Source of the DNA: Syncephalis fuscata S228
Taxonomy: Eukaryota > Fungi > Zoopagomycota
Direction: 5' to 3'
Length of the DNA: 64,000 nucleotides
NCBI GenBank assembly: GCA_025786725.1
Contig: JAHLTZ010000009.1
Span: 310,001-374,000, forward strand
Shown in pieces: positions 6,954 to 50,506 of the stretch (position 1 is its first letter; every line of letters begins with the position of its first letter). Below the pieces are notes generated by a model. That model was given only the letters and a program-made list of their open reading frames with translations. It was not told where the DNA came from and did not search any database. A program made the position numbers and the translations under genes.

Positions 6954-7942
6954 ATGGGGTTTATGAACATTGAAATGGATCCTCTTGGGGAGGAGCACAT
7001 TGTTGATTATATTATGGAGGCTGCAAATGACAAAAAGCAATTTCAAATTCGAGCCCATGGCCTGCAACTCCAATTGGCCATCAATGTTATGGTTGCTTGC
7101 GTCTTTTCGCGTAATTTATACTTTTCCATTAAAATGCTTGTGGCAAAACCAAGAATGTTTGCCGGCTGGTGCTGCTTAATTAGTTCTATCCTGGGCGTTT
7201 CACAAGGCGTAGTATTTGCTGTCGGCTTTCTTTCAGGCAAGCTGGGCTGTCGAGTTATTTATTGGTTTGTCATATTGGTTGTGGGTGTTATCACTACGCT
7301 TAACAATGCAATTATGCTGCATAAAGCATATCTAGCGCTTCGCAGGCGACGTTGGATAATCTATATCGGTGGTCTTTGCTTATTGCCGCAGTTAAGCTTT
7401 AGTTTTGTCGTCTTGGTTAATTCAAACGTTGGAATAAACAATGATTACGGCTGCACTCTTCACTATGAAAAGTTCATACCTTGGTACTGGTTTGGATCAA
7501 GCATACCGATAAGCATTATATTCTCGGGGATCTTTAGCAATGTAGCTTACAAACAATATTGCACCTTCGGTTCAGATGCATGGATGCGTTTAGCACGCGA
7601 TGGTCTGCAAACCATGTGTCTGGCCGTCATTTGCAATATTCTTTGTGGCGCCGGCACAATTCTAGAGATAGGCGGCCAATATTCAGCTTATTTCTTTTTC
7701 GCTGATTGGTAAGTAGTAAATGTATGGATATTTGTACACTGTGCGCTAATCATCATTACAGTTTAATTATTTCCGTTGTTTTAGTTCATTATTGTATTAG
7801 TATATCCGAAGCAGGCACCAAAACAACTCGTTCGCAGAAAAAACACTCCTACACTACCAACATTGGTATCTGTGAAACAGTTACATCATATAACGGACAG
7901 TATTCATCGAATAATAACTTGTCGTCGTTTTATAAATATTAA
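6954..7942 (+). CDS. 7TM/GPCR-like membrane protein, lineage-expanded family
   Basis: PLGE, GWCCLIS, LHKAY, GCxLHY, PWYWF, FSNVAYKQYxxFGSDAWMRLARDGLQTMCL, FFADW; conserved intron after the DW motif, then a short C-terminal exon to TAA 7942. Confidence 0.8.
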
Positions 7943-22971: not shown

Positions 22972-24038
22972 TTATCTGGAGCCAATTGCACCTTTTGTTA
23001 ATAATGAAATTGAGGCCCAATCAGCATCATTATTATCCTGTCGGTTGCTGTCAGTCGAAGGGTGGTTATGCGGTGCATCCTCTGGCTTAATGTGCTGAGA
23101 AAGTTCGTTTGCTGACAATTTTGAGGATTCAGCCGTCTTGCGCATGTTACAACAATGGTCTACTAACACGCTTGTTGTAATCACCCTAAATATAAGTTAG
23201 TAATAGCAGGTATATCGTAATCAGCAACTTACCAATCAGTAAGGAAAAACATTTCTGAAATGTTGCCACCAAGTCGAAACATAATAATAAGGCCACAGAT
23301 AATATTACATAAAATTACGATGGACATGGTTTGAATACCGTCACGAGCCATACGTTTCCACGCTTTTGAGCCGTATTTTTGATACTGCTTGTAAGCCACA
23401 TAACTAAAAATGCCAGAAAAGAATGCGTTAAGTGGCACGGCTGAACCAAACCAGTACACTGGCAAGAAAGTAGGATAGTTAACAACACAGCCGCTTGCAG
23501 AGTTTAGAGTTATTGGACTAAGCATCCATGCAATGTACATGTAGCCCAGTTGCGGTAACATAAACAACCCGCCTACAATTAATACCCAGCGTGGTCGACA
23601 TAGCACTAGGTAGGCTTTTTGAAGCAGAATAACACTATTGCACAGCAAAGAGAATGTAATAGCGAATCCGACATACCAAGCTATCTTTCGACAGGTCAAG
23701 CCTGTAGGAAATAATGATAATGCTGCAATGATGCCAACGAGCATGCCAAAGAGTGAAGGCAGTAGGCAGCACCAGCCTGGAAGTGTTCGGATGCGCATCA
23801 TCACCATTTTTCTAGCAATATTAAAGTTGCGTATAAATATACTGGAAAGTAAAATATTAAATATTAATTGGTGATATAATCCCTGTAGACGTGCGCGGAC
23901 TTGATCGGCATTATTTGGATCTCTTAATACAAAATCCCCTATATCCATCTCGCCCAATGGATGTAAAGGTATGCTCCATAGCCGAGTGGCATTTGCCTCC
24001 CATCCTTCTCTGGGTGATGCGCTATCTTCATAGTCCAT
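22972..24038 (-). CDS. 7TM/GPCR-like membrane protein, lineage-expanded family
   Basis: WEANATRLWSIPLHPLGE, GWCCLLP, LQKAY, FSYVAYKQYQKYGSKAWKRMARDGIQTM, FLTDW followed by the conserved intron. Confidence 0.85.
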
Positions 24039-25383
24039 CAAAATAAATATGGAGTAAATGATTGAATACAAAAAGAATATTAGCAAGTGGGCCAAGCGGA
24101 AGAAGAGACTATTAGGTGCGAGATCAACAGGTAGAGGGTGGGCCGCATACTGGCATTTGTTAAAAGTAAGCAGGTTTTTGTGCTTTGATTGCAGTATAAC
24201 AGATTATATAAATGGTAATAGCAAGTAGACAATGGCATTGTACATGTGGTTTCGCGTGGTTTAAGTTTACCCGAAAATGATGCAGTGATCATACCGGAAT
24301 TGCCAAATCGCCTCTATATTGATTAATAATAAACTGCATATTTAAATACTGTACACTTTGAATATCTAAATATCTTATTAACACTGCTAATATCTAGAAA
24401 GTGTTGGTGTATGTTTTGCACTCTTTGCAATGATATTGATGGTTTAAAATAGTTGAATAGGTCTAGCCTGCTGTCTTGTCCATTTTATATTAATTCGGCA
24501 AATAGCAAAGGCTTTAGCTTGCCCTGGCATTTCGGTTACACGCCGTTTGGCCGTTTCAATTAAACTGCTCTAATAATACCTATGAAATGACAAATCAACA
24601 AAAATAGCAACATTTCTACATTGCTAAATCTGGCACCGTGTTGCGTTAATAGCGTTAGATGGTAAAAGACAGCAAAAGATATAATAATAACAGAGATCAT
24701 AAAATGGTATTTGTTAAATGCTCAATTTCCTTTTATAGTAATAACAATTAATTTTTACAACTCCGACAGGAAGTGCTAACAACGGCACATCAGTATCGGT
24801 GATGTAAAGGATATCCGCAAGTGTAACACGGTCTTTTTTCTTTTACGTTTTCTACACAGTACTTTACGCTATGAATCTCGACGCGGAAAAGTCATTATTG
24901 CAAGTAAGTTTAGTACGTGCTATTTTGTAATGAATACAAACGCATTGTAGAAACTATTAAATCCAGCTTCTGGTTCAAACACGTTGTCGCGTGATTCTTT
25001 GGTTCAAAGGCCAGCTGAACCCACGCCACGCGCAACCAATCCCTTTGCCGTACAAACTGGTTCAGTAATAAGAATAGCGTCGCTAACCCAGGTGGAAACT
25101 TTAATGCGCCGCTCAGTCTATTGACAAGCCAACAGCCACTTGCGGCATTGCATTCAACAAGTAAAACACCAGCAAAGATGTTCAAGACAACATGTCTATA
25201 GACTTTTGCTTATTTGGCCAACAAAATTGTCTCGATCAAAGCGAGCAACAGATTTCCTCCTATGGATATTACGCAAAATAAGATGGCATTATCATATAAT
25301 CAGCAACATGAAAGCACCAGTACACATAGGTTGAAAAAAATACGCGTTTCCCAGTCGCAGTAGCTATAAAATCAAGCGAAGGT

Positions 25384-31034: not shown

Positions 31035-32041
31035 ATGGCGGACTTGAAAGAAGAATGGAAGCAAAACGCCACTAGTATATTAGGAATTCGACTCCATCCA
31101 TTGGGCGAAATATCCTTGCCAGACTTCGTCCTAGAGTCGGCAGACGATCGGGAGTTGACGCATATAAAGCTGACTGGTATTTACCGCCAGCTTATATTTA
31201 ATTTGCTCGCAGCACATTTGTTTGTATACAATTCTTGTCTTGCTTTTAAGATGATACTGGCTCAGCGACGCTCTTTTCCCGGATGGCTTTGCTTAATTCC
31301 TGCGGTGATGGGGATGGGAGCGGGTCTTTTAGCGGCACTATCCATATTTCCTACTGGGCTGAATTGCCGCAAAATATCATGGTATGTTGGGTGGCCATGA
31401 TCGCATCGGTGTTTTGCAATAATCTCCTTGTATTGCAAAAAGCCTACCTGGTGCTATGTCGGAAACGCTGGGTATTGGTAATTGGGCTAGGATGTAGCGT
31501 ACCACAATTACTTCCTATGTACTTTGGATGGGCTTCTAGTCCCGTCACCATCAAGGCTGACACCGGATGTATTGTCCACTACTCGTATCAGTTTCCCTGG
31601 TACTGGTTTGGATTAACAGCACCTATCAATGCATTCTTCTCTGCTATATTTGCCCATGTGGCATATAAACAATATCGCACATTTGGATCTGATGCATGGA
31701 AGCGTTTAACGCGCGATGGTATTCGAACGATGTGTCTTGTAGTGCTGTGCAACATTTTCTGCGCTACTGGAATTATTATAAAACTAGGTGGCATGTTTTC
31801 AGAAATGTTTTTACTTGTCGATTGGTGAGTGGTAAATAATTATACTAATTAAATAGCTAATATAAAACATAGGCTTTTTACGTCAACTATTCTTGTAAAT
31901 CATTGCTATAGTATGCGCAAAGCAATTGCACTGTCGAATCGCCCGAAAACCGAGAATATGTTGCGCATAACTATTAACGGCGGAGAAAATCGGCCCAGCG
32001 ACGAGCATACATTTATCAATCATTCGGCGCAAACACGCTAA
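31035..32041 (+). CDS. 7TM/GPCR-like family member with a 1-nt frameshift at 31389-31391 (pseudogene or sequence error)
   Basis: WKQNATSILGIRLHPLGE..KISWYVG, then in the shifted frame VAMIASVFCNNLLVLQKAY..RDGIRTMCL..VDW; intron; last exon to TAA 32041. Confidence 0.8.
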
Positions 32042-32372
32042 AAAGCATAATCCGATTAATCAAAAATGACTTGGCTAATCGTCGAATATGTTTTATATGA
32101 TAATAATATCTACAAAACACCATGCATTAGATGTATATGTACATAATAAATTATTTATTTTGTTATTCTGCAATATTTGATATCAGTGCAATTCTATTCG
32201 GCCCGAAATTACTGGTTGGTTAACTATCACTTTGACTCCCACATTTTGCGTTTCAAAGCAGCAAATCATTTTACACAATCAATTGTAGTGATTTAAATAG
32301 TTGACGAGTTGATTAGATTAATTGTGTTTAAATGATCATTTACAATAAATATTAACGTAATGTAATAATATT

Positions 32373-33070
32373 ATCATTTCCATAGAATAAAATTGATTGT
32401 AACAGAACATTGTATTAGTAGTTGCTATTTTAAGCATTTAAATAAAGAATGTAACATACTATTTGATTTCATTGAAATTCACAAGGCCTATCATTATTGT
32501 TGTTGGCCATGCGTAGAAATATTAATCAAATATTAATAAAAGCCATTGATTGCAATTCCATGTCGTTTTGCTGTTGTTGTTGTTGTTGTTACTACGTACA
32601 GTGTGGCTTTTTTGAATCTAACTGCTCTTTTCTATTTTCTAATATTCTACTGTTGCACTTTGGACATATTTGCGATGTAAAATACTCGTCTATGGTGGCA
32701 AAAAGATAGGAAGACTAGCGTTTCTGATGTTCACCATTGTCTTGAGGATTCTTGGTATTAACTTGGTAGGCACAGTTTATTTATCGACCATCGATAAAGC
32801 AAATGGCCTCCACCATATGCAATAGTGATAGGTTAAGCTTATTTACCAAAGTATACGGCATGCCGTTGATGCCACTTGAACAGGTGTTGATGTAAAATAA
32901 GATAAATAAAGAGATTGATAATGTTTTTTATTGATGTTCAAATATGCATGCTATCCATATTGGTATAGTTGGTATTATCACATAATATATTACTGAATAA
33001 AAAAATAAGATAGCAATAAGAAAAGGTGGTGAAATGAGTAAATAAAAATGTGGAAGTCAAAGTAAAAATG
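32373..33070 (+). repeat. Dispersed AT-rich repeat, copy A
   Basis: Near-identical to 36667-37265 (ttgttggccatgcgtagaaatattaatcaaatatt...gccacttgaacaggtgtt); degenerate inverted copy at 37790-38355. Confidence 0.85.
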
Positions 33071-34172
33071 ATTTGATCATGTAAACATTACGCGCTCAAT
33101 CCAATGTTTTGTTTTATTGTAATATATAGCTATAATCTTTTATTAATGACTAATAAATAAATAAATCTGTTTTTCTATTATTGCAATAATGTATAATATC
33201 AGCTGCTTACTCTGATAGATAATTAAATTAAGCTTTGTAATACTTGGTTTAGTCTGTGGTCGTATAAATATAAGTATATATGGTTACAATGGAGTGTAAA
33301 TATTCATCCGTACAAACAACCAGCATTATAAATTATAATGACAATAATAAGCTATTTAACTACTAAACTCGTTAATTCAATTTTATTTACATCTATCTGT
33401 TTTCTGTGTGTTATTTTGGTTTAACGTTGCTGCTGTTATGGTCGCATCAGCAACAGCCAACTTTTGATAAATTTAGTCTAGTTTAGCATAACTATAATAA
33501 TTTGCTATAAGTTAAACCAGTAAATCTTTAAGTTGCTAATTGTTTTTCTATTGGTTTCTGCTTTGGCTTGTTTTTCTACATTCTATCCTGCTTAACTTGT
33601 CAAAAGTGGTTTCAGAAATTTAAGCAGCAGTTAGGCCTTGGATGATTACCAATTGATACGCAATCCATTGACATTATGCATTCAAAATTGCCGATATTTG
33701 CCGAGCTATTTGATGTGTCTAGTCTAGTTTTTGTATATTTTATTGTATAGAATTTAGCTGATGCAATATATTTACAGCTGAAAACCGATGACGAAAATAA
33801 CTTGTTGGAATGTTCCATTGCTCAAACCTCTGCAATGCATCATGATACAAACGGCAATTATTGTATAGTCGATTCCGGGTGCTTTAGATTGGCTGTCTTT
33901 GACTGCTGGTGGTTGCACAGTCTGTTACATGTTGTACCTGGATGTAATGCATTTGTGAATAAGACAATAATTGCCCCATAACAATGGGCATAGTGTCGAA
34001 TGAAATGCATACATGTACCAATCAATACATTTTATAATTTAAGGAATCACAACTGGCTTATGTGTGGCAGTAAAAACCCGTATAAAATACCAGTTTGATA
34101 CGATAAACTTGTTTTTGTGGCAATGTTGTAAGCTACTTGTATGTATGTAAATATTGGGACCCGAGTTGCTCG

Positions 34173-34694
34173 GTGGAAGTGACAGCAAATACATCATTAT
34201 TGTTTTACAAAACCAAACAATATACCTGTTTTTACCAAATAGTTAAATTGTGTAACAAAAATACAAGCGAATATGTTTATTTTTATCATATATACTGGAT
34301 TATGAGCACTGCTAAAGTACTCGTGCAAATAAATAAGAGCTTGAAGTAAAGACCGGGCAGGTTGTGCGCTGTTTAGTATGCATATAGATATTAAGGGCCG
34401 AATCGGTAGGAATGGCGGCAAAAATATCATTATTGTTTTACAAAACCAAGCAATATGCTTGCTTTTACCAAATAGTTAGACCGTGTAACGAAAATACAGG
34501 CGAATATGTCTATTTTTATCATATGTACTGGATTATAAACACCGTTGCAGTACTCGTGCAAATAAATAGCAGATTGAAGTAAAGACCGGGCAGGTTATGC
34601 ACTATTTTGTATGCATGCGGATATTGAAGACCGAATCATTAAGTGGAAGTGACAGCAAAGACATCATTATTGTTTTATAAAGCCAAACAATATA
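34173..34694 (+). repeat. ~235-bp tandem repeat, ~2.2 copies
   Basis: Unit gtggaagtgacagcaaa..catcattattgttttacaaaacc..gtactcgtgcaaataaata..ttgaagtaaagaccgggcaggtt recurs at ~34173, ~34406 and ~34643. Confidence 0.85.
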
Positions 34695-34798
34695 GATCAT
34701 CACACTCTACTTCTTGCTAAACACGCACTACTTTCCACTCTCTACCAGCCACACTTTACGATCTCTTTTATTTGTTTGTCTTACAAATCAATATCATT

Positions 34799-34999
34799 AT
34801 GAAGCTTTCTATTGCCGCTGTTTGCACTATTGTCGTAGCTCTTGTAGCCAGTACAGCTATGGTGGATGCTAAACCAGCCTTAATTCGTCGTGATTACGAT
34901 AGCTGCATGTTTGAATGTCGCATGGGTTGTTCCTATCCTGATTATGGAATGATTTGCAAAACCGTTTGCGACAGAGAATGCCGCCGTGCTAACCCATAA
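34799..34999 (+). CDS. Intronless secreted 6-Cys peptide precursor (CxxxCxxxC-x8-CxxxCxxxC); paralogue of the micro-exon gene
   Basis: MKLSIAAVCTIVVALVASTAMVDA-KPALIRR-DYDSCMFECRMGCSYPDYGMICKTVCDRECRRANP*; AATAAA at 35240-35245. Confidence 0.88.
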   Translation: MKLSIAAVCTIVVALVASTAMVDAKPALIRRDYDSCMFECRMGCSYPDYGMICKTVCDRECRRANP

Positions 35000-36666
35000 A
35001 CTCGTAACCCATAACCATAAAAGGATTAGCATTGGTAGTGCAATCAAGCCACTATTTCAATACACTTTAGATATATATTCGGTGAAAAGCAAGACCATTT
35101 GACAACTACGCCGTCTAGTATATCTATATATTAATTTTTGGCCAATGCTCCGGTTTATCCAGTCTCTAATCAATGGAATCATTGTTTTATCAACAAACTT
35201 GCATCTAGTTGTTTTTATTCAACTGTGCAAGCTTATAGTAATAAACTTATGGTTTCATCTTAACTATATACAATCAAATTGATATATCTATAATTATATC
35301 ATGTAAGCTATAAACATCGATTGGTATGGATAGTAGCAAAGCTATCATTATCATATAGCCAAATAATATTATACTGAAATTAGAGTAAATACGCTTTTTA
35401 ATAAAACATGGCAATAAAGCATACAATATTATAAACAAAATAAATAGACAAAACGAATACGTGAATAGTGATAGTGAAACTATACTGTATGCAATTAGCC
35501 AATAGTAATGAACGAAATGGATCAAAATCTGCTAAAATAATACAGTTAGCAATAAACTTTTAGCTTTTATTAGTATAGTTTTTACAATTTACAATATTAA
35601 TAATATAGACGGACATATAGTATATGTATAAAGGATAGATATGTACAGTACAATAATAATGATAAATAAATAGCTTAATAATCAATGACACTCAACAGCC
35701 AGTTTTATCTTCAATAACACAAATATTTAGTTTAAATGTGTGGCTATTATAGCTATTTAACTGCCAAATCACACTAAACAACCAATAGCATGCTCAATAT
35801 TGTGGAAAAAGTTATCTTTATTTAGTTAATAAAATATTATAAGATTTAATACAAATCAAGTGGTTTAAATGATCCGTCATAACACCCTTTTAAGCTTCTT
35901 TCGCCATGTCCCACAACTCTTTTTAAATTAGAACATTGGAGCGACTACTGCAATGTTTAAAAATGAACGTTACGAGTAGATTGTTCTAGTTTATCAATGA
36001 CAAATGCCATGTTGGCGGTTTTATTTTGCACATCTTCACTCTTGCTTGATACACCAGCTAATTAATTTAAGTTGATCAAAGCAATAATACATTCATGTAA
36101 TTTGAAATTGTTTAATTGCTAAATCTGATATTTAAAACGCTCTAGATAAACCAGTATAATTTTATTTGTTGATTAAATTTTAAATTTAAAAATATTTATT
36201 AATTATATCATTTTTGTTTGCATTACACTTTATTGAATAAATTTAAACTGCTAATGAAACAGCTATTAAAATAAATAAAAAACAGTTATTTCAATATTAA
36301 CTACTAGTCCAATATCATTAGTGTTAATCCTTACATAGCATGTTTTTGTAATGTATTTTTGAGTTGTATTTGCCACAAGTATATTGTTGAAAGTCTTTTA
36401 ACAAATAAAATACAATTTGCATTGCTGTTGATATTACTATAATCAACTAAATTATGTAAATAAGCAAAATTTTAAATTAAAATTTGTTGCATTATTTAAA
36501 AAAATCTTATTAGGCATTTTTAGCTTTTTCAGAATTCTCAATTTTACTTTAACTCTTATATTTTGAGTCTTCAAAGCAAACCTGGTTTTAATTGAAAATA
36601 TGCTGTTATGTACAAAAAACATAGCCATAGTTTTTCATTTAAAGACTTTAAAATTTATAAGGTTAG

Positions 36667-37265
36667 TTATTGTTGTTGTTGGCCATGCGTAGAAATATTA
36701 ATCAAATATTAATAAAAGCCATTGATCGCAATTCCATGTCGTTTTGCAGTTGTTGTTGTTGTTGTTACTACGTACAGTGTGGCTTTTTTGAATCTAACTG
36801 CTCTTTTCTATTTTCTAATATTCTACTGTTGCACTTTGGACATATTTGCAATGTAAAATACTCGTCTATGGTGGCAAAAAGATAGGAAGACTAGCGTTTC
36901 TGATGTTCACCATTGTCATGAGATTCTTGGTATTAACTTGGTAGATGCAAATTATTTACCGGCCATCGATAAAGCAAATGGCTTCCACCATATGCAATAG
37001 TGATAGGTTAAGCTTATTTACCAAAGTATACGGCATGCCGTTGATGCCACTTGAACAGGTGTTAATGTAAAATAATAAAAATAAAGACTAGGGATTAAAT
37101 AATGTTCTTTATTAATATTCAAATACACGTGTTATTTATATTGTTATATTCAACATTATTATATAATATATTACTAAATAAAATATTTAAAAAAAGATAA
37201 GACGATAAGATAGCGATAACAAAAAAATAGTGAAATGAGTAAATAAAAATGGAGTGTCAAAGCAA
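36667..37265 (+). repeat. Dispersed AT-rich repeat, copy B (direct)
   Basis: Near-identical to ~32493-33070. Confidence 0.85.
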
Positions 37266-37789
37266 AGTAGCTTTTACTGGTTAATTGGGCGTCTGCTAGA
37301 GCTGTACCGATTTAAAACTATCTTAATGCAATAATTTGCATTTACTAGTGTATTTAATTGGTAATAACCTGTTTACTTGTATGTGGCTATTGACGAAAAT
37401 TTACCCCCCCCCCCCATAATAACGACCCATCAATCAGTTTTTATTACTGAGAATTGCTATTTGTTAAAGCAGTGTCATATCAACTCTGATTCAATTAATC
37501 AATATTAATTAATCTGCACTATTTTCAATATTTGATATTCGTGTTAATAAATATTATAGTATTTCATATCACTTACAATAAAATATAATAAATAAATAAA
37601 TGCTGATTTATATTATTGTTGTAGTAAATTATTTAAAGCATTATAGTTTGATTATTTAATATAACTCACCATTCAGTTCCATGTTTATTAGAATAACAAA
37701 TGTGTAGTTCAATCATGTAAAAGATGTCAATTTTGGTCTTTTGATACTTAATCCCATGAGTCTACTAATAAATTACTTAATATTAGTGA

Positions 37790-38355
37790 GTTATTTTACT
37801 TTTACTTTTCTATTTTTATTTATTCATTTCACTCCTCAACACAAATACAATTAAACACTCATTCATCACTATAACACGTATAATATCGCATCCAATATTA
37901 ACTAATTCATGTGTAATTATCAATACAATAATATAATTAATTAGTTATCTTTATTATTGCTCTAACATACATATATAGCCATTTATTTAGTCAGATTGGC
38001 TATAGGAAAATGGCTGTTTAATAAACGACATTTATAATAATTACATTAATATTGATCTTACATTACAAATATGCCCAAAATGTAATAGTAGAATAGTAGA
38101 AAATAAAACAGACCATTCAGATGCAATAATCCACGCTGTATGTAGCAACAATAACAACAACTGCGGAATGACATGAAATCACAATCATATGGCTTTTATT
38201 AATATTTTATCAATCTTTCTACACATGGCCAACAACAATAATCGGCCCCAAATGTTTTAAAGAAATCAAATAGTATGTTGCATTGTTTATTTAATGTTTA
38301 TATTATTACTAATATAATTTTTTGCTACATTTAATTTTATTTTATGGAAATGACA
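37790..38355 (-). repeat. Dispersed AT-rich repeat, copy C (inverted, degenerate)
   Basis: 38055-38355 is a reverse-complement match of ~32373-32685 (tttctacacatggccaacaacaataat; gaaatcaaatagtatgttgcatt). Confidence 0.7.
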
Positions 38356-39292
38356 TCTAGGAGTCTCAAAACTTCAAAGACCGCAATGGCTAGATTCTGT
38401 TTTATAAACTTGATGTTTCATTTGGATAAAGCAGTACAAGTCCACTTTATAGCTTATCTTTACAAAAATAGCTCCTTGGCGGAAATCAAAAGATTGTGGC
38501 GAGAGACGGTGCACTAAGTGAGGCCGATACAGTACTTTTAATAAGAGAATGAGAACTTGCAATTGTTTTGCATTTTTTTATTAAACAGCAGACCATGTGC
38601 CAATTAGGAAGAAACTGTCACAAGTACAGTCATTAATAATTGGAAATTGTTCCATGAACGCGGTGTAGCCTGATAGTTCCACGCTTTCAACTGGGTCCTA
38701 GTGCGACTTACTCAACCATTATACTCGACCATGGGCATAACAATACACAATATATATCGTCATATACACATTACTGGCGTAGTTGTATATTTAAGTTGCT
38801 AGTATGAACGCGCACAATAGACCAGTAATAGGCGGAATAAAACCTGTATAAGCAAGTTATTTTCTAGTTAGTGCTAACTGAAGTAGACTGGAATTTCAGG
38901 ATGCGACCGGATCGAACGAGAAAAAAAACGTGGTTACCTATTAACCAATGAACCTTACAATAGAATGTAACATGCAGATATAAAACATCATGTTCTGCTT
39001 GTGCAAAAGGCCTTGTTTAATGCAGCAATAAATGGCATGCATGCGCCAGCTCCCTCAGTATGTGTAAACCTGTCAGTGCTAGGCGGGGGCTTTTGCTTCA
39101 GCATAGAGTAAACGTAATCCTTTAAGTGAAAAGCCTAGTGTTGATAGATAGGCTGTTGCGCTGAAGTTTGATATCTACATGCAAGTAAACGGGTTTTTGG
39201 CCATGGTGCATTTATGTTCCTATATTATCTGTAGATTTCGAGTTTGCCATCCGAATTTACTTAATTTCACCATTTAACTGCCCACCTTTTAT

Positions 39293-39342
39293 TACCAGCA
39301 CTGACCACTCAATTTCATACCAGCACTGACCACTCAATTTCA
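39293..39342 (+). repeat. Exact 25-bp tandem duplication upstream of the 7TM gene
   Basis: taccagcactgaccactcaatttca x2. Confidence 0.9.
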
Positions 39343-39377
39343 TACGATTCTGTGTACACATCAAATATACTACAATT

Positions 39378-40320
39378 ATGGATATGATCGAAGACCTCGG
39401 ATACCATTCAGACTGGCGGCACAATGCCACGCGTCAATGGGGTATTCCGCTCCATCCAAGCGGCGAGTTATATTTGTACGATTACGCAGCCTTAAGAGAC
39501 GACAGACTGTCCACGCAACAACTACTATTAAGCATTTATTTCGAGTTATCTGTTGATTTAATGATGTCGACTTTGTTTGCACAAAACTTTTTTAAAGCTG
39601 CAGTTATGATTATTAGACAGCCAAACTTTCTTTCCGGGTGGTGTTGCATAATTCCCGCCTTTCTTGGAGCTGGCTGGGGAGTGGGTGTAGTTTTATATCT
39701 TCTTGGGCAAACAAGCTGTCGGCCTGTAGTTTGGTTCTTTGTTTTTGCTACTTCAATTTCCAGTATAAGCAACAACATAATCATACTGCAAAAAGCCTAT
39801 ATTGTTCTGATCAAGCAGAAGCTAATACTGGTTATTGGCGCTCTGTTTATGATACCGCAAATGGTATTTATGTTTGTTTTTCTATCCTCCTCCTGGGTCA
39901 CGACAAATGTTCAAGGAGGCTGTGCCATCCATTATGCTCCCTCAATACCTTACTACTGGTTTGCTTTAAGCATACCTATTAACGTCCTATTTTCAACGTT
40001 ATTTAGTTATGTGGCCTATAAGCAGTACACCACATTTGGAACTGAAGCCTGGAAACGACTGGCGCGCGAAGGCATACAAACGATGTGTCTGGTGGTAATT
40101 TGTAATATTATTTGTGCAACATGTCTTCTACTTGAAGTAGGAGGCCAATTTGTAGATATGTTTTTTGTCGCAGACTGGTAAGTATTTGACAAAATACTAT
40201 TAGATAATTGCTAATATTAGTAACAGGTTGATTACATCAACTATTTTGGTATATCATTGTAGTACAGCAAGGAAAAACGTGGTGCGTCAATATCAGTTGG
40301 GCGTTGCTAAAATTCACTAA
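39378..40320 (+). CDS. 7TM/GPCR-like membrane protein, lineage-expanded family
   Basis: WRHNATRQWGIPLHPSGE, GWCCIIP, LQKAY, FSYVAYKQYTTFGTEAWKRLAREGIQTMCL, FVADW; intron; TAA 40318-40320. Confidence 0.85.
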
Positions 40321-40968
40321 TTGCGTCAATAGCAAACAACATAACATTTATACTTTTGTTCTTTATTGGCTTTGCACTCGCTATACCGTTATGCTGGCAT
40401 AGGTGTAACAAGTAGCGGCAGGCATATTTTTACTGCACATGCAACTTAGCCGAACTAGCATTAAAAAAACTGAATTATTTATGTAAACATAGTAGATTGT
40501 TAAAAACTAGTATAAATAGTAAAATATTGAACTGGGTGTATAGTCCTGCAATAGAACTGATTTACTTTATGATGAAAATAAACTGGTATTATATTTTTTC
40601 GATAAAATAGTAATTAATATTGTCAAAAACTTTATTGTATTTATATTTATTTATAAATCTTATTTTCTAAAACGACGTAAATACTTGGTCAGATACATAT
40701 GAGATACTAATGTAATCGTGCTATGTGTATAATTTTGTTTAATTCTTTTCTTGGTAATTTAATGCTAGCAATTATAATCATTGAATACTATTAACATATG
40801 CCACTTTTTAGCAACATTTAAACTTTATCACATATGCAATCCATTATTTAAAGAGCAACAATAACATAAACGGTTTATCTTGGTATAATAAAGCTACTAC
40901 AGCTTGTTACATCACAACAAATTCGCAATAACTGATTGAAATAACCACTGAAACTAACAACATCATAG

Positions 40969-42896
40969 TTACAAAGACATGTCACGCACTGTATCAACTT
41001 CACCGTCCATCTGATCATCGTTATTAGCATGATGCTGGCTGACAGCATTACTGCGAACAATAACCGGCGCATCAGAGGGAAGAAAATCATAATCAGCATC
41101 GACCTCTTTTTGGGTATAATAATAAAATTGCATAAAAATAGTCATATCGAATATGAGTGTGCCACCACTTCCTATTAAGAACGGCAATGCATGCTTGATA
41201 TTTTCTACGGAAGTCGACCGCGCGAAAATAGAAGCAACATAGGTGAAGTTACCTATGGCGGCAAACATAAACATAAACACGGATAATCCCTAGACAAGTT
41301 AAATTATTACAATGATTGGTTGGAATAAATATCAAATTATCGCATTTCACTGCTTAGTGTTACAGATCATTACTTACTTCAGCCGATTGCCGTTTATACT
41401 GCACAGATATGGTAGAAATAAGTATGGGTGCTACTATTATAAATTAAAAACTTACATTTTTGTATATCTGTGGTATACGTGACGTTAAATAAAGAACCGT
41501 GCACGTCCAAGATATAATAATTCCAATATTATCACGTGTAAACCAGCGATCCATAAAGAAATCGGATTCGGTAGCCTGAGCAATAAATGCACGCCGTGTG
41601 AGATGTGACCATGACGTTGAAGTGCTATGGAATACAACGCCGCCATCTCCATTTGCTGATGTATCCAATCCGTTAGAAAACGGATCAATAAATTGGTAGA
41701 AAGCTAGAAATGACACAGCAAATAAAGTAGAGACACTAAATAACATTTCTACATTAGTAGCAATATAATGGTCCAATTATTAATGCTAAAATTACCTCTG
41801 GCGAATAGCCATACTATTACGTCGTGATGTTGTGTAATACGGCACTAGACTGGCGTCTTCAAGTAAAGGTGTATTTTCGGTCGATTTAGCATCATTTTCC
41901 GATTCACTCTCGCTACTAAGTGGCGGCAATCGATGGCTATGTACCGAATGAACCGATTCGATGCACTCTTCGTCCGCAGAGAGGATTGTTGGATCTGCCC
42001 CATACGCATGGTGCAAATGTTCCTCGGTATTTTGCCGTACTGCTTGCTCAACTTCATGCTGCGGTGCAAACCAAGCGCCATGGCTATCGACCGACCCAGT
42101 CAGACAGTAGCGACGACGCTGACGATGATGGCCGTGTTGATCGTGTGACATAGCCGCCGAATGGGAAGCACGCCGAGAAATACGCGAGGGTGTTGTGAAA
42201 TGCCTACGTCTACGTCGGTCCTTTCTACGATAGTAAAAGTATTGACATAGCAATGCCATATCAATCAGACAAAAATAAAGTGCCAAGAATATCTACTATT
42301 GTTAGTATGTACATAATCTCTCATATACGTAATTATGTAAGTATAATTAAATCAACTCACTTGAAAAGGCAATTGACGTGTTAATACCGAGCCGATGAAA
42401 TTGGTAATATCACCTACAAATGAATACAAATCAATGATACGTAATATATTTGTATAAACTGTTGTACTCACCCATTAGCCAATTGAATAGGAAGCGCAGA
42501 CTTAGCGAGGCCGCTGACTGGTTAAGATAGTTGGTATACAATTGACTAAAATCGTTATTAGCTACAGTTTGAATAGCATGATTTCATTGGGAACTTGCGG
42601 AACTTGAGCGGTTAACCAACTGAAGATAGAAAGATAGCCTAGCCAGATGGGTTTATAAATAAGCTACCTATCATTAATATAATGATACAACCCTGCTGAC
42701 TTACCAAACAGGTTGCTAGTGGCAATACGTGGATCCTCCACGCAAATATTCATCCAATCCTAAATGATAAAGTGCATTGAGATAGAACAATATAACCTGT
42801 TAGTACTCTATAGTTGTAGAAGCAGCGTCTTACATTGAGCCAAGCAAAGAAAGGGGAATAAGGCTCGCAGACATGTTCTGGCTTGGTAAAGTCCAT
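40969..42896 (-). CDS. PQ-loop repeat vacuolar/lysosomal amino-acid transporter (YPQ/PQLC2-like)
   Basis: LGYLSIFSWLTAQVPQLYTNY, WLMGDITNFIG, QLPFQ, YLTSRIPQIYKN, GNFTYVASI, LPFLIGSGGTLIFD. Confidence 0.9.
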
Positions 42897-43410
42897 ATTG
42901 ACCGCTATATTGCCAACAGCAATAGACTTATTGCCGTTGTATAACTCGAAACAATATAGAACCAAGCAACTATGGACAGGCAATACAAAATAATAAACGA
43001 ATAGTACCAATCGTACGCTATATAATAAGCCGACTATCGACGAACACAAAGTACAAACTGACTGATGACGTTTTAGTAGCGAGTAAAAGGATAGAGACGC
43101 CTTGCTGAAATGCCACTACTGTCACGGCTGCTGTTATTGCTGCTACAACAACAGGTGATAGTAATTGATAGTACGAATGAAAGAGCGAAAATAGAAAATA
43201 CTCAGTGGCCCATTTTGATATCAAGCCAATCAACGACCAATTCACATTGCTTATTGTTTAAGGAGGCAAAAATTTCGCACGACCTCTGTTTCTATTGCTA
43301 ACTGTATACGCTTTATTTTCTTTAATTCTACAACCGATAGTAGCATTAGTATACTTGTCGGCAGTATTTAGTTACTTATTCGTATATACGTATTTATATA
43401 TTTAAAAATT

Positions 43411-44029
43411 ATGCCTATTGGTTACATCTCGCGTATAGAGCACTTTTCTGCTGCTCATCGACTTCATTCGGCAGCACTGTCGGCCGAGGAGAATCAACTT
43501 GTGTATGGCAAGTGCAATCACCCTAACGGTCATGGCCACAATTATAAAGGTAAAGGGCCCTAATCGGCCAGTATATCTAATCAGCAGTTCTATCTAACCA
43601 ATGGAAATTATGGTTATAGTTCAAGTAACGCTACGCGGTAAAATAGACCCGCAAACAGGTATGGTTACGAATCTGGTGAATTTAAAAAACTGCCTACAAC
43701 TAGCAGTTATGGAGCCATTGGATCATCGTAACCTTGTAAGTTGTCATTAAAGTAAAGCGAGTTATTGTAGCAAGTGGGGCTTATTATAATACGACAGGAT
43801 ATTGATGTGCCGTTCTTTAAAACAAATGTCAGGTAAATTAACCACTAAATTGATCTGATGTAATTTGTATTGATACGCTTATTTATGCAGTACTACTGAA
43901 AACGTTGCAGTATTTATTTGGCAGCAAGTAGAAAAGCACATGGCATTAGCTGGTTGTCAAGGCAACTTACATGAGGTCTGCGTTTGGGAAACTGATCGTA
44001 ATATGGTCATTTATCGTGGTGAAGAATAG
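43411..44029 (+). CDS. PTS: 6-pyruvoyl tetrahydropterin synthase (multi-exon; missing from ORF track)
   Basis: [77 protein letters not shown]. Confidence 0.93.
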
Positions 44030-45567
44030 GTGGTCATCATAAAAAGTCGTTTGTATTTTGTCTTTTAAATATATAATTATTATTATATTATTGTCCGTTA
44101 CATGTTTTATGATTACAGTCTATTTATATTCATTTAATCTTTATATTTATTACTTTAGTGTGGGTGTTAATGTATTTTATAATTATTGATAATGAATGGA
44201 TTAGTTTGTGTTATTTACGCTTCGCTTATTAATTAATTAACTCATATTTCTGTAAATATTGTCTGTCAAGACTTGTCATTGACTATCTACGTCATCGCCT
44301 TTCCTCTTCTCTTCTTTACACTTACAACATGTATCCATTGTATATTTCTACAGTCCATATATATTATCCAGATAGTGCCAGTAGTTGACTGACTATTAGT
44401 TAAATACCAGCACTTTTTACATTACCCACAAGCATTGCTCTTTTGTAATCTAACCTTTTCTACTAATTGTTTTCTCGACTCTGTATATTGGTATTGGCAT
44501 ACTAACTATATTTTTGGTTTAACGCAGCATTATATTTAAATATATGCTGTGAAATTGCTACTGTGTGCCTTGTTTTATTGCCAATACTATTAGAAATCGT
44601 GCTGATAATAGTGTGCAATCTCGACAGTAGTAGGCCCCATTGTTATATGCGTGCAATTACCAACACAATAGCTGTATTGTCTATATTTGTTGTTAACTCT
44701 CCGGCGATAGAATAATATATAGTAGTGTGCATATAAAATGGATATGATATGGGTGGATGAGGATATATAAGTATACTGGATATATACTTACTGAATAATA
44801 AATCTGTGATGATAAGCATTTGATGCTTGATGTCACTTACAACCCAACCCATATCATGTTCGATAGAACAAATGTCTAGCTCAATTGCGCAAATGTTGTT
44901 AAATATAAGCTAATTTGGACATTCAAATACATTGGCATTATAATACGAATGTATTTTTAATGAGCACGGGTGTTTTTTTAATAAGGATAAATAGGTGGTA
45001 ATCATTTACGCCATTTTTGAATTAAAAAATATATACATTTTTAGAAAAGTATAATAAAGTTACTTTTGATCACCGTATTATATTTAATAAATAAATTATC
45101 TTTAACTGCTTGCTGCACATGTTAGAAATATATGCTAACGAGTGAGTTGTTTGTCTATGTAATGTGCCTGTGCAAAAACGATATATTGACCACATGGCAC
45201 ATGTTACAAGTATCGATCGAGTTCACTCTCTACTGCTTGATCTAGGATTGTAGATTAGAATTACTAAAGATGCACATTTAAAAGTGATGCTGTGGCATCA
45301 GCAATTTTATTTTTTATTTTTTGCCATGTCTGCCGTCAACGTGAAAGGAAATATAATAAAAATAAGTGCAAATGATAAATGGCGATTTAAACATAATTTA
45401 ATTTAACCGCTCGCTAATCATTCAAGTCATTACAATTGATTGCGTAAAAAGGTCGTTTACTATATCTTACGCTTCCCATATTAAAAAAATGATTTATCTG
45501 ACATTTTTGCAAAATTGATGTTCAGTCAATATAAGAGATACAAAAAAGGTGTTTTTTATAAAATCAA

Positions 45568-45670
45568 ACAAAATAATATATACAAGAGCCATTGGCCTGT
45601 CAATAAGTGCTGGCAAATATTGAACCGATGAAAGCATCACAAAGATTTGATTGCTTTTAAAATTGTTAAT
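45568..45670 (+). repeat. ~100-bp degenerate direct repeat, left copy flanking the micro-exon gene
   Basis: aaaataatatatacaag..tgtcaataagtgctggcaaatattgaa..caaagat matches 49798-49899. Confidence 0.75.
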
Positions 45671-46078
45671 TGAATAGTAGTACTAATATAGCTATACTGC
45701 TTCATATTGGTGAACAGTTTATAATTCCTGTACAAGTCTGATATTGGTATGCTTGTTCGATTAGTGTTGTTAATTATTATATATAAATTAAATACAAACA
45801 TATGCAACAAATTATTGCTATTATTAAAATGAAACCATAGATTTATTACTATAAGCTTGCACAGTTGAATAGAAACAACTAGATGCAAACATGTTGGTAA
45901 CATAATGATTCCATTGATTAAAGACTGGATAAACCGGAGCATTGGCCAAAACTTGATATATAGATAGACTGGACAGCGTAGTTGTCAAATGGTCTTGCTT
46001 TTCACCGAATATATACCTAAAGCGTATTGGACTAGTGGTTTGATTGCACTACCAATGCTAATGTCTTGAAGCCATTGA

Positions 46079-49026
46079 CTATTCTGTATTTACAAATAAA
46101 GATATTATATGGTACATAATTAATTTATACTCTACTAATATAATACTACTTACTGCCTATTAGTATTAAGTTGTTGATACACATGGTGCATAACATGTGG
46201 TTAGTGCGTAATTAATTAATATATAATACAACCTACATTCATCTAATATTAATTAGTTGATGGATACAGTAAATAGCATGTAGTTAGTGAGTAACCAGTT
46301 AGTATACAATATAGCTTACCTTCTATTGATATTAATTTATTGCCGCACACATTACATGATGTATAATCAGTGCATAGTTAGTTAGTACATAATACAACTT
46401 ACTGCCTATTAATATTAAGTTGTTGATGCATATAATACATGACACAATTAATGCATAATTAATTAATACACACCATAACTTACATTCTATTATATTAAAC
46501 AATTAATGCAATTAGCAAATAACATAGTTAATGCATAGTCAGTTAATATACAATACCACTTACTCTCTATTAATATTAAATAATTGGTACAATTGGTAAA
46601 TAGCATAGTTAATGTATAGTCAGTTAATATACAATACCACTTACCAGCTATTTATATTAAATAATCAGTACAGTCAGTCAATATTATAGTCAATAAGTAG
46701 CCAGTTAATATGCAGCACAACTCACCGCCTGTTGGTATTAAGTTGTTGATTTATACAGTAAATGGCATGTGGTTAGTACATAGTCAATTAATACAGAATT
46801 TCACATACAATCTATTAATAAGGTTGTTGATGCATACAGTATATAGCACATAATTAGTGTTTAGTTAGTTAATATGCAGTGTTACTTACTTTCTATTGAT
46901 ATTAAATAATTGATATAATCAGTAGATAGCACATAATTAGTGCATAGTTAGTTAATATTTAATGTTACTTACGACCTATTATATTAAATTGTTGATTTAT
47001 ACAGTACATGGCATGCAATTAGTAAATATTCAATTAATACATAATACAACTTACGACCTATTATATCAAGTTGTTCATGCACACAATACATAGTACATAA
47101 TTAGCTAGTAGCCAATTAATACACAACATAACTTACGAACTATTAATATTAAGTTGTTGATACACACAGGACATGGTATATAGTTAGTGCATAGTCAATT
47201 AATGCGCAATACTACTTACTTCCTATGGTATTAAGTTGTTGATAAACACAATACATGACACAGTCAGTGAGTAGTCAGTTAACATACAATGTTGCTTACT
47301 CGCTAATATATTAAGTTATTAATATACACAATACATGGCACATAATTAATACATGATTAGTTAATATACAAGGCTACTTACCGCCTATTAATATTAGGTT
47401 ATTAATATACACAATGCATGGTATATGGTTAGTCAATACTCAATTAATATATAATATAACCTACATCCTATTAATATTAATTTGTTGATACACGGTGCAC
47501 AATATAAATTAGCACACAGTCGGACAATACACAATGCTACTTACTCTCTATGGTATTAAGTTATTGATACACATAGTGCATGGTATAGAATTAGTGCATA
47601 GCCAATTGATATACAATGTTACTTGCCCACTAATATATTAAGTTATTAATATACACAATGTATGACACGTAATTAATACATGATTAGTTAATATACAATG
47701 CTACTTACCGCCTATTAATATTAGATTATTGATATAGACAATACATGGTATATGCTTAGTCAATACTCAATTAATATATAATATAAGAGAGGGGGTACGC
47801 GAAGAAGAAAGAAGAGAACTAATAAAAACAGCAACAAAGACGGCATTGGACTTCGTATGGAAGAAGATATGGAAGACAAGATGCAAGCAAGTGGACGAAG
47901 CAATAGGAAGATGGAAAACAGTACGTACCGACACACAAATAGCAGGTCAACCAGAACCACAAGAAGGTCCGGCAACAAACGCTGAAGGCCAGAGAGGCCT
48001 GAGGCAAATTTATACCTGGGACCACACCAATAAAATGGCGTTCGACGTCGAACGCCACCTAAAGATGGTGGCCCCCGCGTGGAGTCTATAGGACCCGGCT
48101 CCATGCAAAAACGTGGCGGTCCACTCGGTATCAACAATGCTACATTGTTTAATATTTTAAAAGCTTTATTATAATTAACGCGATAACAGCATGACACTGA
48201 GAAGCAGCACAAATTCTTTAATTATGCGCAGCGGGGGCCCACAAGCTCTTCAAAATAAAATAAAATAAAATAATATATAATATAACCTACATCCTATTAA
48301 TATTAATTTGTTGATACACGGTGCACAATATAAATTAGCACACAGTCGGACAATACACAATGCTACTTACTCTCTATGGTATTAAGTTATTGACACACAT
48401 AGTGCATGGTATAGAATTAGTGCATAGCCAATTGATATACAATGCTACTTACCGCCTATTAATATTAAGTTGTTAATACACATGGTGCGTAACATATAAT
48501 TAGTGAGTATCAATTATTATATAATACAACTTACATTTAGCTAATATTAATTAGTTGATGGACACAGTACATAATATATAATTAATGCATATTCAATTAA
48601 TATACAATACAACCTACCAGCTATTGATTTGTTGATGCATACAGTGCATGACATATAATTAATGAATAGAAATTTAATGCACAGTACAACTTACGATCTA
48701 TTATATTAAATAATCGGTACAATCAGCGAATAGCATATTTAATATATAATCAATTAATATACACCACAACTTACCCTCTATTAATATTAAATAATTGATA
48801 CAATTAATAAATAGCATGTGATTAGTGCAGTCAATTAATATACAATATCACATACGAGCTATTATAATAATTATTTAGAAATACCGTTAGTAAATAAAAT
48901 GCCATATCATATTCATTGTTATTGCAACATACCACGACGAACTAAGGCTGGTTTAGCATCCACCATGACCGTAGCGGCTATCAAAGCCACAACGACGATG
49001 CAAACGACGGTAATGGAAAGCTTCAT
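46079..49026 (-). CDS. Micro-exon gene: 30 exons (28 of 3 or 6 nt) encoding a 62-aa secreted 6-Cys peptide precursor
   Basis: Exon 1 49026-48933. Micro-exons (+ strand low coordinate): CTC 48856, AGG 48775, ATC 48695, CTG 48618, CTAAAT 48535, GCG 48453, AGA 48371, GAT 48291, GCG 47709, TGG 47627, AGA 47545, GAT 47465, GCG 47382, CGA 47300, GAA 47220, TTC 47137, GTC 47055, GTC 46973, AAA 46890, ATT 46809, GCG 46726, CTG 46645, AGA 46564, AAT 46484, GCA 46403, AAG 46320, ATGAAT 46237, GCA 46154. Last exon AATAG 46083-46079. Every micro-exon is flanked by YAG and a GT (one GC) donor. Confidence 0.88.
46140..48870. repeat. ~80-84-bp tandem repeat array (each unit = intron + micro-exon)
   Basis: Unit acttac-NNN-ctattaatattaagttgttgatacaca...ttagtgcatagtcaattaatatacaat, ~28 copies. 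Confidence 0.95.
47787..48270 (+). mobile_element. 5'-truncated non-LTR retrotransposon (LINE-like) insertion with 15-bp TSD
   Basis: TSD taatatataatataa at 47772-47786 and 48271-48285; (TAAAA)n tail; ORF open from the 5' junction containing VWKKIWKTRC. Empty site visible in the duplicated unit at ~47441-47467. Confidence 0.85.
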
Positions 49027-49797
49027 GGTGATATTGATTTGTTAAGACAAACAAATAAAAGGATAGTAGAGTGTGGTTGATATAGAGTGAAAAGTAGTGC
49101 GTGTATAGCAAGAAGTAGAGTGTGATGATGATATTGCAGTTGGTTGTGTATATTTTGTAGGCTATTTAAATCTATGGCTACGCTGAAATCCCAACAAGAT
49201 GTACTGAATAAACTGTTCCATTGATATGTAGTGTGAACCAATAACAATACATCCATGTGGTGGCATGAGGTGCATGCATACTAATGAATCAATGGCATGA
49301 TAGCATAAGACCCGCCTTTGCTTCGACCTGTTCAGCATCTACACAGCCAATGATCCAGTATGTGTGTGATAGAGATACACGGATTAACCTGTATTTTATT
49401 ACACAATTCAACTATTGGATGTAAGCTAGCTGTTATGGTGTTCAGGAGGGAACACCATAATATTTGCAACAGTATGATAGCTTATAATCAAAGAGGATCA
49501 AAGTATAATAGTGCCCATAAAGTATTGAAAATTTTATTCTATAATAGCATAGTGCCGAATGAAAGATGAAAAGATATGGCTACAGTTACATTTTCGATGT
49601 AATAAAATATATACTAAATAGTAAATTTATTTGTTTAAGCGGGTATTGTTAACATTTTATTAATGTGTAAAACAATATGTGATTTATAGATGATTGAATA
49701 GTAATCCTTTAAAAGAGAAAGAAGAGTGGCGTCCAACAAAGCTGCAAGCAACAAAAAAGATGCCACTTAATGTATTCGACGATGCACTGTTCAGCAA

Positions 49798-49899
49798 GCA
49801 AAATAACACATACAAGGGCTATCGACTTGTCAATAAGTGCTGGTAAATATTGAAACGATGAGAGCATTGCAAAGATCTAATTATACTTAAAATTAATAA
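49798..49899 (+). repeat. ~100-bp degenerate direct repeat, right copy flanking the micro-exon gene
   Basis: Matches 45568-45670. Confidence 0.75.
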
Positions 49900-50506
49900 G
49901 TATTTTTCTTTTCAGGTAAGTATTTAACATAGTCATTCATTATTTAACAAATCGGTTACTTTATAGATTTATTATGTTTGTAAAAAAGATTAGTATAAAA
50001 AATCCACCAACACACCATCTTGGCCTACTAGAGCTGTCAGGTGGTGTGGAATCAAGATACTATGGCAGATCGGCAGAGCTTGCCAGACCATCTCAAACTA
50101 ACTCAATCACCGTCGAGAGTACGGATTCAAGCATCTCTGACATCTAGGCGGAGAATGATTTGGATATCAAAGGTATGTGGATTTAAATGTCTAAAACAGC
50201 AATTACTGAATAGATAATGTATCATATTAAATTTATACGTATTTGTTTACCTCAATCGACAATCCATGTCACATTCTTCATTTTTCATAATCACATGTTT
50301 CAATATATTGTGGATGGAAAAAACGGTTTGTTTCTCTTATCTTGCCGACTCTTCGTCTTTAGCTTGTAATTGTAGCTATTCCCTCTTTATCGCCCCGTCT
50401 AACTGCGCTCCATTACTCATAGCAAAAACTTTTACGCTTATCGTTCTATTGACCAGTAAAGCAAGTGTGTGAAGCTTAAACACTGTCACGAGTTATACGC
50501 AACAAC

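Follow-up and report, generated by a model that had tools for sequence, protein, structure and literature searches.

W1, an intronless gene of Syncephalis fuscata S228, lies in a duplicated cassette of a gene family whose array members encode their peptide at about one codon per exon, with 16-40 near-identical introns. The duplication of the cassette with its flanks, the absence of all introns, the deletion of the promoter, the interleaving of intronless and array-bearing states and the in-order matches between joined exons and intronless sister genes are all directly observed. It is fairly likely that W1 arose when an array-bearing cassette, duplicated at the DNA level, had its introns (about 30-35) replaced in place, all at once, by a spliced cDNA.

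The intronless gene W1 and the array gene W2

Positions are those of the window, the whole stretch of 64,000 nucleotides that was analysed (contig JAHLTZ010000009.1 of GCA_025786725.1; locus L004 is identical to it). W1 is the intronless gene studied here, W2 is the minus-strand array gene starting at 49026, and L1-L10 are the members in loci L001-L010 (L2a/L2b and L6a/L6b where one locus holds two). Direct reading of the ORF at 34799-34999 (+) gives an intact frame of 66 aa without any intron, with a hydrophobic, signal-like N-terminus closing in a dibasic RR, followed by a mature part of 35 residues with six cysteines.

34696-34798 (+): 5'UTR, beginning at the presumed transcript start, about 40 nt below where the TATA-like box lies in the family
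34799-34892 (+): signal/pro region ending in RR, equivalent to exon 1 of array genes and stopping at their first splice donor
34892-34999 (+): intronless mature peptide and stop, 35 aa, CX3CX3C-X8-CX3CX3C, predicted helix-loop-helix
35025-35263 (+): 3'UTR with AATAAA at 35240-35245, 91% to W2, 93-94% to L8 and L7

The intronless frame and the abrupt limits of its similarity to W2, both described in a first-pass annotation of this DNA, are confirmed. The 5' block (34688/34696-34892, corresponding to 49136/49129-48933, 84%) terminates exactly at the first splice donor of W2, and the 3' block (35025-35263, corresponding to 46062-45824, 91%) ends about 20 nt past AATAAA. Between them, the mature regions are nearly unlike (nt z 0.2, aa z 2.3 against exon-order shuffles). 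An exact look-up of the W1 protein and of a neighbouring ORF finds no record, a Pfam scan of W1 gives no family above cut-off, with only a sub-threshold TIL match, and an Rfam scan of 32000-50500 gives no match.

W2 has the structure of an array gene:

49307-49524 (-): promoter element, single copy, z 8.2
49162-49169 (-): TATA-like TAAATAG box, at -143
48933-49026 (-): coding part of exon 1, 31 codons + 1 nt
46084-48932 (-): array of 29 phase-1 introns (mostly 70-80 nt) and 28 micro-exons, in frame and stop-free
45824-46083 (-): last exon (stop 46081-46079) and 3'UTR

Its micro-exons, 26 of 3 nt and two of 6 nt, join into a 31-residue, 6-Cys peptide; when their order is shuffled, the frame stays open in 4% of cases and six cysteines are obtained in 0/5000. 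The micro-exons of L7 are likewise 34 of 3 nt and one of 6 nt. By inspection, the N-terminus encoded by array exon 1 is conserved, hydrophobic and signal-peptide-like, and a coding region made mostly of tiny symmetrical exons is found in array members only. The introns are tandem copies of one unit of about 78 nt, 63-83% alike and recombining. A distinct first intron type is common to all arrays and a distinct last intron type is found in all five checked; first introns are 85-91% alike within the W1 clade vs 58-74% for other pairs. The array thus appears to predate W1, since the first and last intron types are common to arrays and the first introns are most alike in its clade; the correlation between first introns and UTRs (Pearson 0.77; Spearman 0.22, not significant) rests on that one clade.

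Genes with 16-40 consecutive 3-nt exons escape standard annotation. The deposited L7 model agrees with the first three parsed GT-AG introns and two 3-nt exons, and the deposited family models break off after a few exons at most, reading through an intron. With canonical introns, up to four of them, neither the deposited W2 model (P0009) nor P0004, P0012 and P0015 can be rebuilt; the W2 model (L004 10001-10406, i.e. window 49026-48621) has N where the joined exons give D. No family transcripts are found in any collection searched.

Several further details of the arrays can be mentioned. Blocks of intron-plus-exon units are duplicated in W2 (48455-48293 and 47547-47467, minus strand), and runs of identical units, also present in L1 and L8, amount to codon-wise expansion. 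GC-AG introns occur at window 47626 and at about 10913 of L007, in arrays otherwise keeping frame, and weak donors (GTAAAT, GTAATT, GTGGGT) at several introns, the frame still being kept. L8 has a 2-nt exon, and its peptide is read with X at that break. L2b (L002 12373-15342), an array that opens with ATA where a start codon is expected, has one or more exons of 2 nt and lies 2.4 kb from the intronless L2a, is a probable pseudogene. A 100-bp inverted repeat (81%) flanks W2 at 45565-45664 and 49795-49894, with a related piece upstream of L9.

Flanks, promoter element and junctions of W1

W1 was compared with L7, an array gene with 35 micro-exons located on a separate contig (L007) and bounded by the same direct repeats of about 620 bp. 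W1 is collinear with L7 upstream across 32439-34694 (78%, about 2.2 kb) and downstream across 35028-37183 (to about 37200), at 94% in the UTR and then mostly 80-90%, so that both share a cassette of about 4.8 kb between two direct repeats.

32472-33066 (+): 5' copy of the direct repeat of about 620 bp bounding the W1 cassette, 87% to the 3' copy, 75-78% to the L7 copies, no TG..CA, no target-site duplication
33067-34124 (+): distal upstream flank, homologous to L7 (77-86%) and partly to L8, L2a, L2b and L10
34125-34695 (+): family promoter element of 233-235 bp, two full units and a truncated third (L7 has three full units)
34688-34696 (+): 5' junction, CAATAT microhomology (6 nt) joining unit 3 to the 5'UTR, from comparison with L7
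35000-35024 (+): rearranged junction with short local repeats, in place of about 21 nt of the usual last-exon start, by direct reading
35264-36647 (+): downstream flank collinear with L7 (68-93% in 120-nt windows), with one 66-bp deletion near 35293
36648-37266 (+): 3' copy of the direct repeat, by sequence comparison

Two profiles confirm that the upstream DNA belongs to the family. An HMM from L2a/L2b alone matches the distal flank of W1 at 33703-33929 (E 1e-11), and an HMM of the promoter element made without W1 recovers its units (E 5e-12) and, within the DNA of the family loci compared, matches solely family upstream regions on the same strand. The element is also present upstream of W2 (49524-49307), L1, L2a, L7, L8, L9 and L10. 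An unrelated dispersed element is thereby ruled out as the nature of the 233-bp repeat, since it occurs only upstream of family genes and in one orientation.

The third unit of the tandem is cut off at about 34695, as had been noted in the first-pass annotation. Compared with L7, W1 is devoid of the array and of about 308 bp, namely the remainder of unit 3 and the TAAATAG box. The 5' starts of W1 (-103, with microhomology at this point), L6b (-104) and L3 (-98) all lie about 40 nt below the place that the TATA-like box takes in the family. The junction at exon 1 is exact in W1 and that at the last exon is scrambled, not seamless; junctions are exact in L3, L5, L6a and L6b. Expression of W1 may be weak or silent, because the TATA box is missing and its sequence matches no recorded protein.

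The poly-A tail and the target-site duplication, already reported as missing, are indeed absent at W1: the 3'UTR runs straight into L7-type flank, the junction sequences differ and unit 3 is not resumed downstream. The first-pass annotation had taken the limits of similarity to W2 for the mRNA-like boundaries of a processed retrocopy that begins within a tandem repeat. This interpretation does not survive the comparison with L7, as the tandem is the family promoter element, the flanks are duplicated, and homology continues on both sides into DNA shared with this paralogue (2.2 kb up, 1.9 kb down). The 3' limit of W1/W2 similarity is the point where W2 departs from the flank type of L7, L8, L5 and W1, and nearly all family pairs, array-array pairs included, lose similarity at that same point.

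The direct repeats of the cassettes were considered as LTRs, which is unsupported (no TG..CA ends, no target-site duplication, uneven identity in W1). Within a locus they are 87% alike in the window (32472-33066/36648-37266), 97.8% in L007 (7301-7945/15173-15813) and 98.8% in L008 (7761-8270/15582-16091). The 510-645-bp direct repeats of these three cassettes are two unrelated sequences, without LTR ends or target-site duplication; such repeat-bounded cassettes suggest movement via circular DNA or the collapse of tandem duplicates. In the W1 clade, the 3'UTR is 91-96% alike vs 81-92% for the signal exon and about 80% for the flanks, a conservation that could reflect either selection or 3'-biased conversion.

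Intronless genes as probable spliced versions of the arrays

Joined micro-exons were compared with intronless sisters in 36 pairs, with 1000-2000 exon-order shuffles. The in-order match is very strong for L7/L6a (nt z 10.3, aa z 17.6), L10/L2a (nt z 8.0, aa z 11.9) and L7/L5 (nt z 7.9, aa z 10.1), and is also found for W2/L6a (nt z 5.9, aa z 9.5), W2/L5 (nt z 4.7, aa z 8.4) and L9/L3 (aa z 4.5). That of L7/W1 is weaker (nt z 3.3, p 0.01; aa z 5.2, p 0.001), the nucleotide score alone being marginal given 36 pairs, and eight of 32 aligned residues are identical between the two peptides. The earlier statement that the mature peptides share little beyond the Cys scaffold thus holds for W2 and not for L7.

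The intronless sisters retain 36-38 codons in order, L3, L5, L6a and L6b have their stop codon exactly at the last-exon position, no remnant of the intron unit is found at any intronless copy, and no partly de-introned copy is found among those seen. The case for a joint loss of all introns with exon order kept is strong for L6a, L5 and L2a and weak for W1. Deletion of units is excluded for L6a, L5 and L2a by this in-order retention of codons. An RNA template could explain such copies, because crossover between units deletes codons and leaves an intron.

The surroundings of the intronless genes differ. L5 and L2a retain the TATA-like box and have flanks in common with array genes, L2a sharing 930 nt upstream with L10 and L5 sharing 1050 nt downstream with L8; L3, L6a and L6b share solely transcript-sized blocks with arrays and have short A runs at the 3' end. 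The former two would fit a loss in place and the latter three look retrocopy-like, and W1, as far as its sequence indicates, is intermediate, with family flanks on both sides, yet a 5' start at -103.

No array spelling the W1 peptide is found among the seven arrays, and L1, L8, L9, L10 and W2 fail as donors. The search for such a locus, proposed in the first-pass annotation, is thus negative for W1 itself, but other arrays do spell the peptides of intronless sisters of their own clade; the suggestion of a parent other than W2 is probably right, as W2 does not spell the W1 peptide. As far as sequence goes, splicing of the arrays appears to be best supported by the intronless sisters, and the claim that these are fossil evidence of it is borne out, most strongly by L6a, L5 and L2a rather than by W1. 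They also constitute independent evidence that the spliceosome can join such exon runs in order.

Family tree and direction of change

A tree of 13 members, seven arrays and six intronless genes, was built from 5'UTR, exon 1 and 3'UTR; it is unrooted, with no outgroup. Intronless and array states interleave on it, with five changes, at least three of them forced by starred branches, and a single intronless clade is rejected (AU p 1.9e-14 with 13 members, p 1.6e-4 with 11 members). W1 belongs to a 100/98 clade with the arrays W2, L7 and L8; with 11 members the tree makes it the sister of L8 (97/95), and with 13 members its place is unresolved. The UTR-based tree that had been proposed to polarise gain and loss shows this interleaving but has no outgroup to root it. 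Intronless copies are not basal and predominant, being 6/13 and scattered on the tree. By parsimony, it can be argued that the intronless state of W1 was derived by loss, since gain would imply at least three independent insertions of dozens of homologous introns.

By exon 1, W1 sides with L8 (8 sites to 1), and by the 3' flank with L7 (5 to 1; Fisher p 0.011); the quartet for the flank relied on a short block that was misaligned in part, and of its six tests one was picked after seeing the data. Because the two regions group in this way, a donor other than the resident gene is suggested.

The family comprises 14 loci and about 20 proteins, a lower bound biased to annotated copies. Database searches started from the intronless ORF and from pieces of exon 1. 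A profile search of 1.84 billion proteins matches S. fuscata proteins and one unnamed, unrelated-looking 2039-aa repeat protein (by Cys spacing), and unannotated array genes of other species would escape such a search. A literature search on Syncephalis or Zoopagomycota with micro-exons finds no paper, most subscription papers lying outside its coverage; the family is apparently undescribed in print. Among its other members, L009 carries a further intronless, degenerate copy at 12945-13414 (-), tail-to-tail with the array gene L9. L6a and L6b (L006 8702-9894/9951-11164) form a tandem intronless pair, 99% alike in 3'UTR and downstream flank and 87% in exon 1, with unrelated mature peptides and a degenerate family copy after each. 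In P0005, P0016, P0018 and P0019 the family signal/pro leader precedes products that are longer and unrelated; one of them has an SVWC domain.

Origin of the intronless state of W1

W1 very probably has an RNA origin, either directly or via a retrocopy, both of which need splicing and reverse transcription. For the direct route, W1 would be a DNA-level duplicate of an L7-type, array-bearing cassette (the duplication itself is observed), whose micro-exon array would have been replaced in place by a reverse-transcribed, spliced family mRNA. On the 3' side, recombination would have taken place by homology within the 3'UTR, the resident downstream flank continuing seamlessly. On the 5' side, the cDNA would have been joined at the transcript start via the 6-nt microhomology, with deletion of about 308 bp including the TATA-like box; we infer that the cDNA end caused this deletion, which is itself visible. 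The cDNA probably came from a paralogue standing closer to L8 than to L7, as the grouping of exon 1 suggests. The same RNA route would have been followed at least three times in the family, in place for L5 and L2a and as mRNA-bounded retrocopies for L3, L6a and L6b. Against cDNA replacement, the microhomology at the 5' break explains this junction without any cDNA end, no array spells the W1 peptide, the W1-L7 match is weak and the 3' junction is scrambled.

One serious, if unlikely, possibility is that the RNA step took place elsewhere: a spliced mRNA would have been retroposed, like L3/L6b, and the resulting intronless DNA copy would later have converted an L7-type cassette by ectopic recombination. 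The genome does contain mRNA-bounded intronless copies (L3, L6a, L6b), a donor whose sequence starts at -103 would produce an identical 5' junction, and L6a/L6b, with their 99% 3'UTR and unrelated mature regions, show exchange between intronless copies. However, no such donor is found among the 17 proteins recovered, and the 3'UTR of W1 is 93-94% identical to that of L7/L8, which are array genes, whereas the intronless copies reach 68-88%. We consider it improbable that the family started out intronless and that several lineages later acquired arrays, either by gain or through DNA conversion. Intronless genes do make up six of the 13 members, and on an unrooted tree change counts cannot tell gain from loss; but this history needs at least three independent gains of 16-40 introns at every third base, each with the same distinct first and last intron, the peptide spelled by an array is that of the intronless sister in its own clade and not that of a common donor, and the block duplications of W2, L1 and L8 show that arrays grow by unit duplication.

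The two remaining explanations fare worse still. Introns that are 63-83% alike and recombining, together with the microhomology and filler at the W1 junctions, would suit a deletion between tandem intron units at the DNA level, but unit crossover also removes codons and leaves at least one intron, whereas the sisters keep 36-38 codons in order; an assembly artefact is countered by the flanks, which differ from those of L7 by about 20%, so that W1 is not a collapsed copy. Such an event is very improbable. Hardly credible is a classic processed retrocopy, inserted in an unrelated tandem repeat through target-primed reverse transcription. The gene is intronless, its homology to W2 is confined to the transcript, its 5' end lies at the presumed transcript start and non-LTR elements seem to be active nearby, but an array-bearing paralogue matches both flanks over about 2 kb, the truncated tandem unit is not resumed downstream, and poly-A and target-site duplication are missing. 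If it is taken instead as an insertion into a family gene that removed much of the target, this amounts to the cDNA replacement described above. Of the original proposal, the derived, RNA-templated intronless state can thus be kept, and the classic retrocopy abandoned, as family flanks are retained.

Retroelement-like inserts in the arrays

For the cDNA replacement that we favour, the source of reverse transcriptase is most plausibly a non-LTR element that inserts repeatedly in array introns. Intron 9 of W2 contains a 5'-truncated, non-LTR-retroelement-like insert with a target-site duplication, 98.6% identical to an insert in L2b. Six inserts of this one family are found in four arrays, all antisense and 5'-truncated, with an (AAAAT)n-type tail:

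window 47785-48276 (+): W2 intron 9, antisense to W2
L001 11233-11648: antisense to the array
L002 12851-13680: antisense to the array
L008 10175, 11495 and 13080: antisense to the array

Several have clear target-site duplications, and most lie near one position of the intron unit. The longest copy encodes a CCHC-like motif, CX2C-X7-HX4C, which is typical of non-LTR ORF2 ends; a Pfam scan of the insert ORF gives no match and no reverse transcriptase domain in these fragments. In the four loci compared, inserts are seen only inside arrays, and their placement may reflect a target preference for the intron unit or just AT-rich sites.

One speculative and rather doubtful extension is that the family forms a two-state system of diversification. 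Unequal crossover in arrays would add, drop or swap single codons in frame, the retroelement drawn to the intron unit would supply nicks and reverse transcriptase, and spliced products would be rewritten into sister cassettes, swapping peptides between promoters and being fixed as intronless genes.

The peptide and comparison with known systems

Syncephalis species are mycoparasites (PMC13188720). A single-sequence AlphaFold2 model of the W1 peptide is a helix-loop-helix (pLDDT 85). Nigellin-1.1 (PDB 2nb2) is its top fold match (TM 0.70, E 2.2) and sole sequence match (E 0.46), neither being significant. W1 resembles plant alpha-hairpinins and nigellin-1.1 (PMC11591084) by its CX3C spacing on two helices and its predicted helix-loop-helix, but it has six cysteines rather than four and no significant homology to plant members, so that the likeness is likely a convergence. 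The products of the family would probably be secreted peptides, cleaved by Kex2 and folded as disulphide-stapled helical hairpins, and may act against host fungi or competitors. Change by codon position is third-biased in the signal exon (2/2/8 vs L8) and even in the mature region (17/17/15 vs L7), and this unbiased mature region resembles those of fast-evolving secreted peptides. The family points to a set of small peptides, secreted by a mycoparasite, that had escaped notice.

Reverse-transcriptase intron loss (PMC3652778) is close to what we propose, as there the cDNA of a spliced mRNA recombines with the genomic copy, neighbouring introns disappear jointly and precisely while flanks stay, and the genome also makes processed copies of the same genes. 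W1 has the retained flanks expected of loss in place, bar the 308-bp proximal promoter deletion, and its introns would be ancestral on a tree without outgroup. Here, however, about 30-35 introns would be lost in one step, with homology available only in exon 1 and the 3'UTR because internal exons have 3 nt, the loss appears to be all-or-none, the donor may be a paralogue, and the 5' junction deleted the proximal promoter. In-place, RNA-templated loss from such an extreme array would therefore be a variant of a known process in an unusual gene family. Teleost hatching enzyme genes (PMC6385490) also show repeated total intron loss with upstream sequence kept; there, the explanation given is retrocopying together with the promoter, whereas here both flanks are kept and an array-bearing twin survives. 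With L1-type processed retrocopies (PMC7692494), W1 shares the intronless state and perhaps the 5' end, which lies at the presumed transcript start, and L3, L6a and L6b fit well, but W1 lacks three of their hallmarks, namely poly-A tail, target-site duplication and unrelated flanks, since it keeps kilobases of family flank.

The array genes seem to resemble schistosome micro-exon genes (MEGs; PMC4350168) in design, being unrelated and more extreme. Like MEGs, they would encode secreted products with a conserved, putative signal peptide and a fast-evolving mature part made from tiny symmetrical exons, in a parasite, with transposable elements nearby. In contrast to MEGs, the present family is fungal, its exons are almost all exactly 3 nt and phase 1, its introns are tandem copies of a unit of about 78 nt, it has intronless sisters, there is no sequence homology, and Cys spacing suggests full inclusion rather than skipping.

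Finally, the window contains a dispersed family of multi-pass membrane ORFs (3228-3794, 6954-7712, 23229-24095, 31035-31828 and 39378-40181). One scanned member is without Pfam match, the copy at 31035-31828 is split over two frames, and the family ends in a common motif before an intron.
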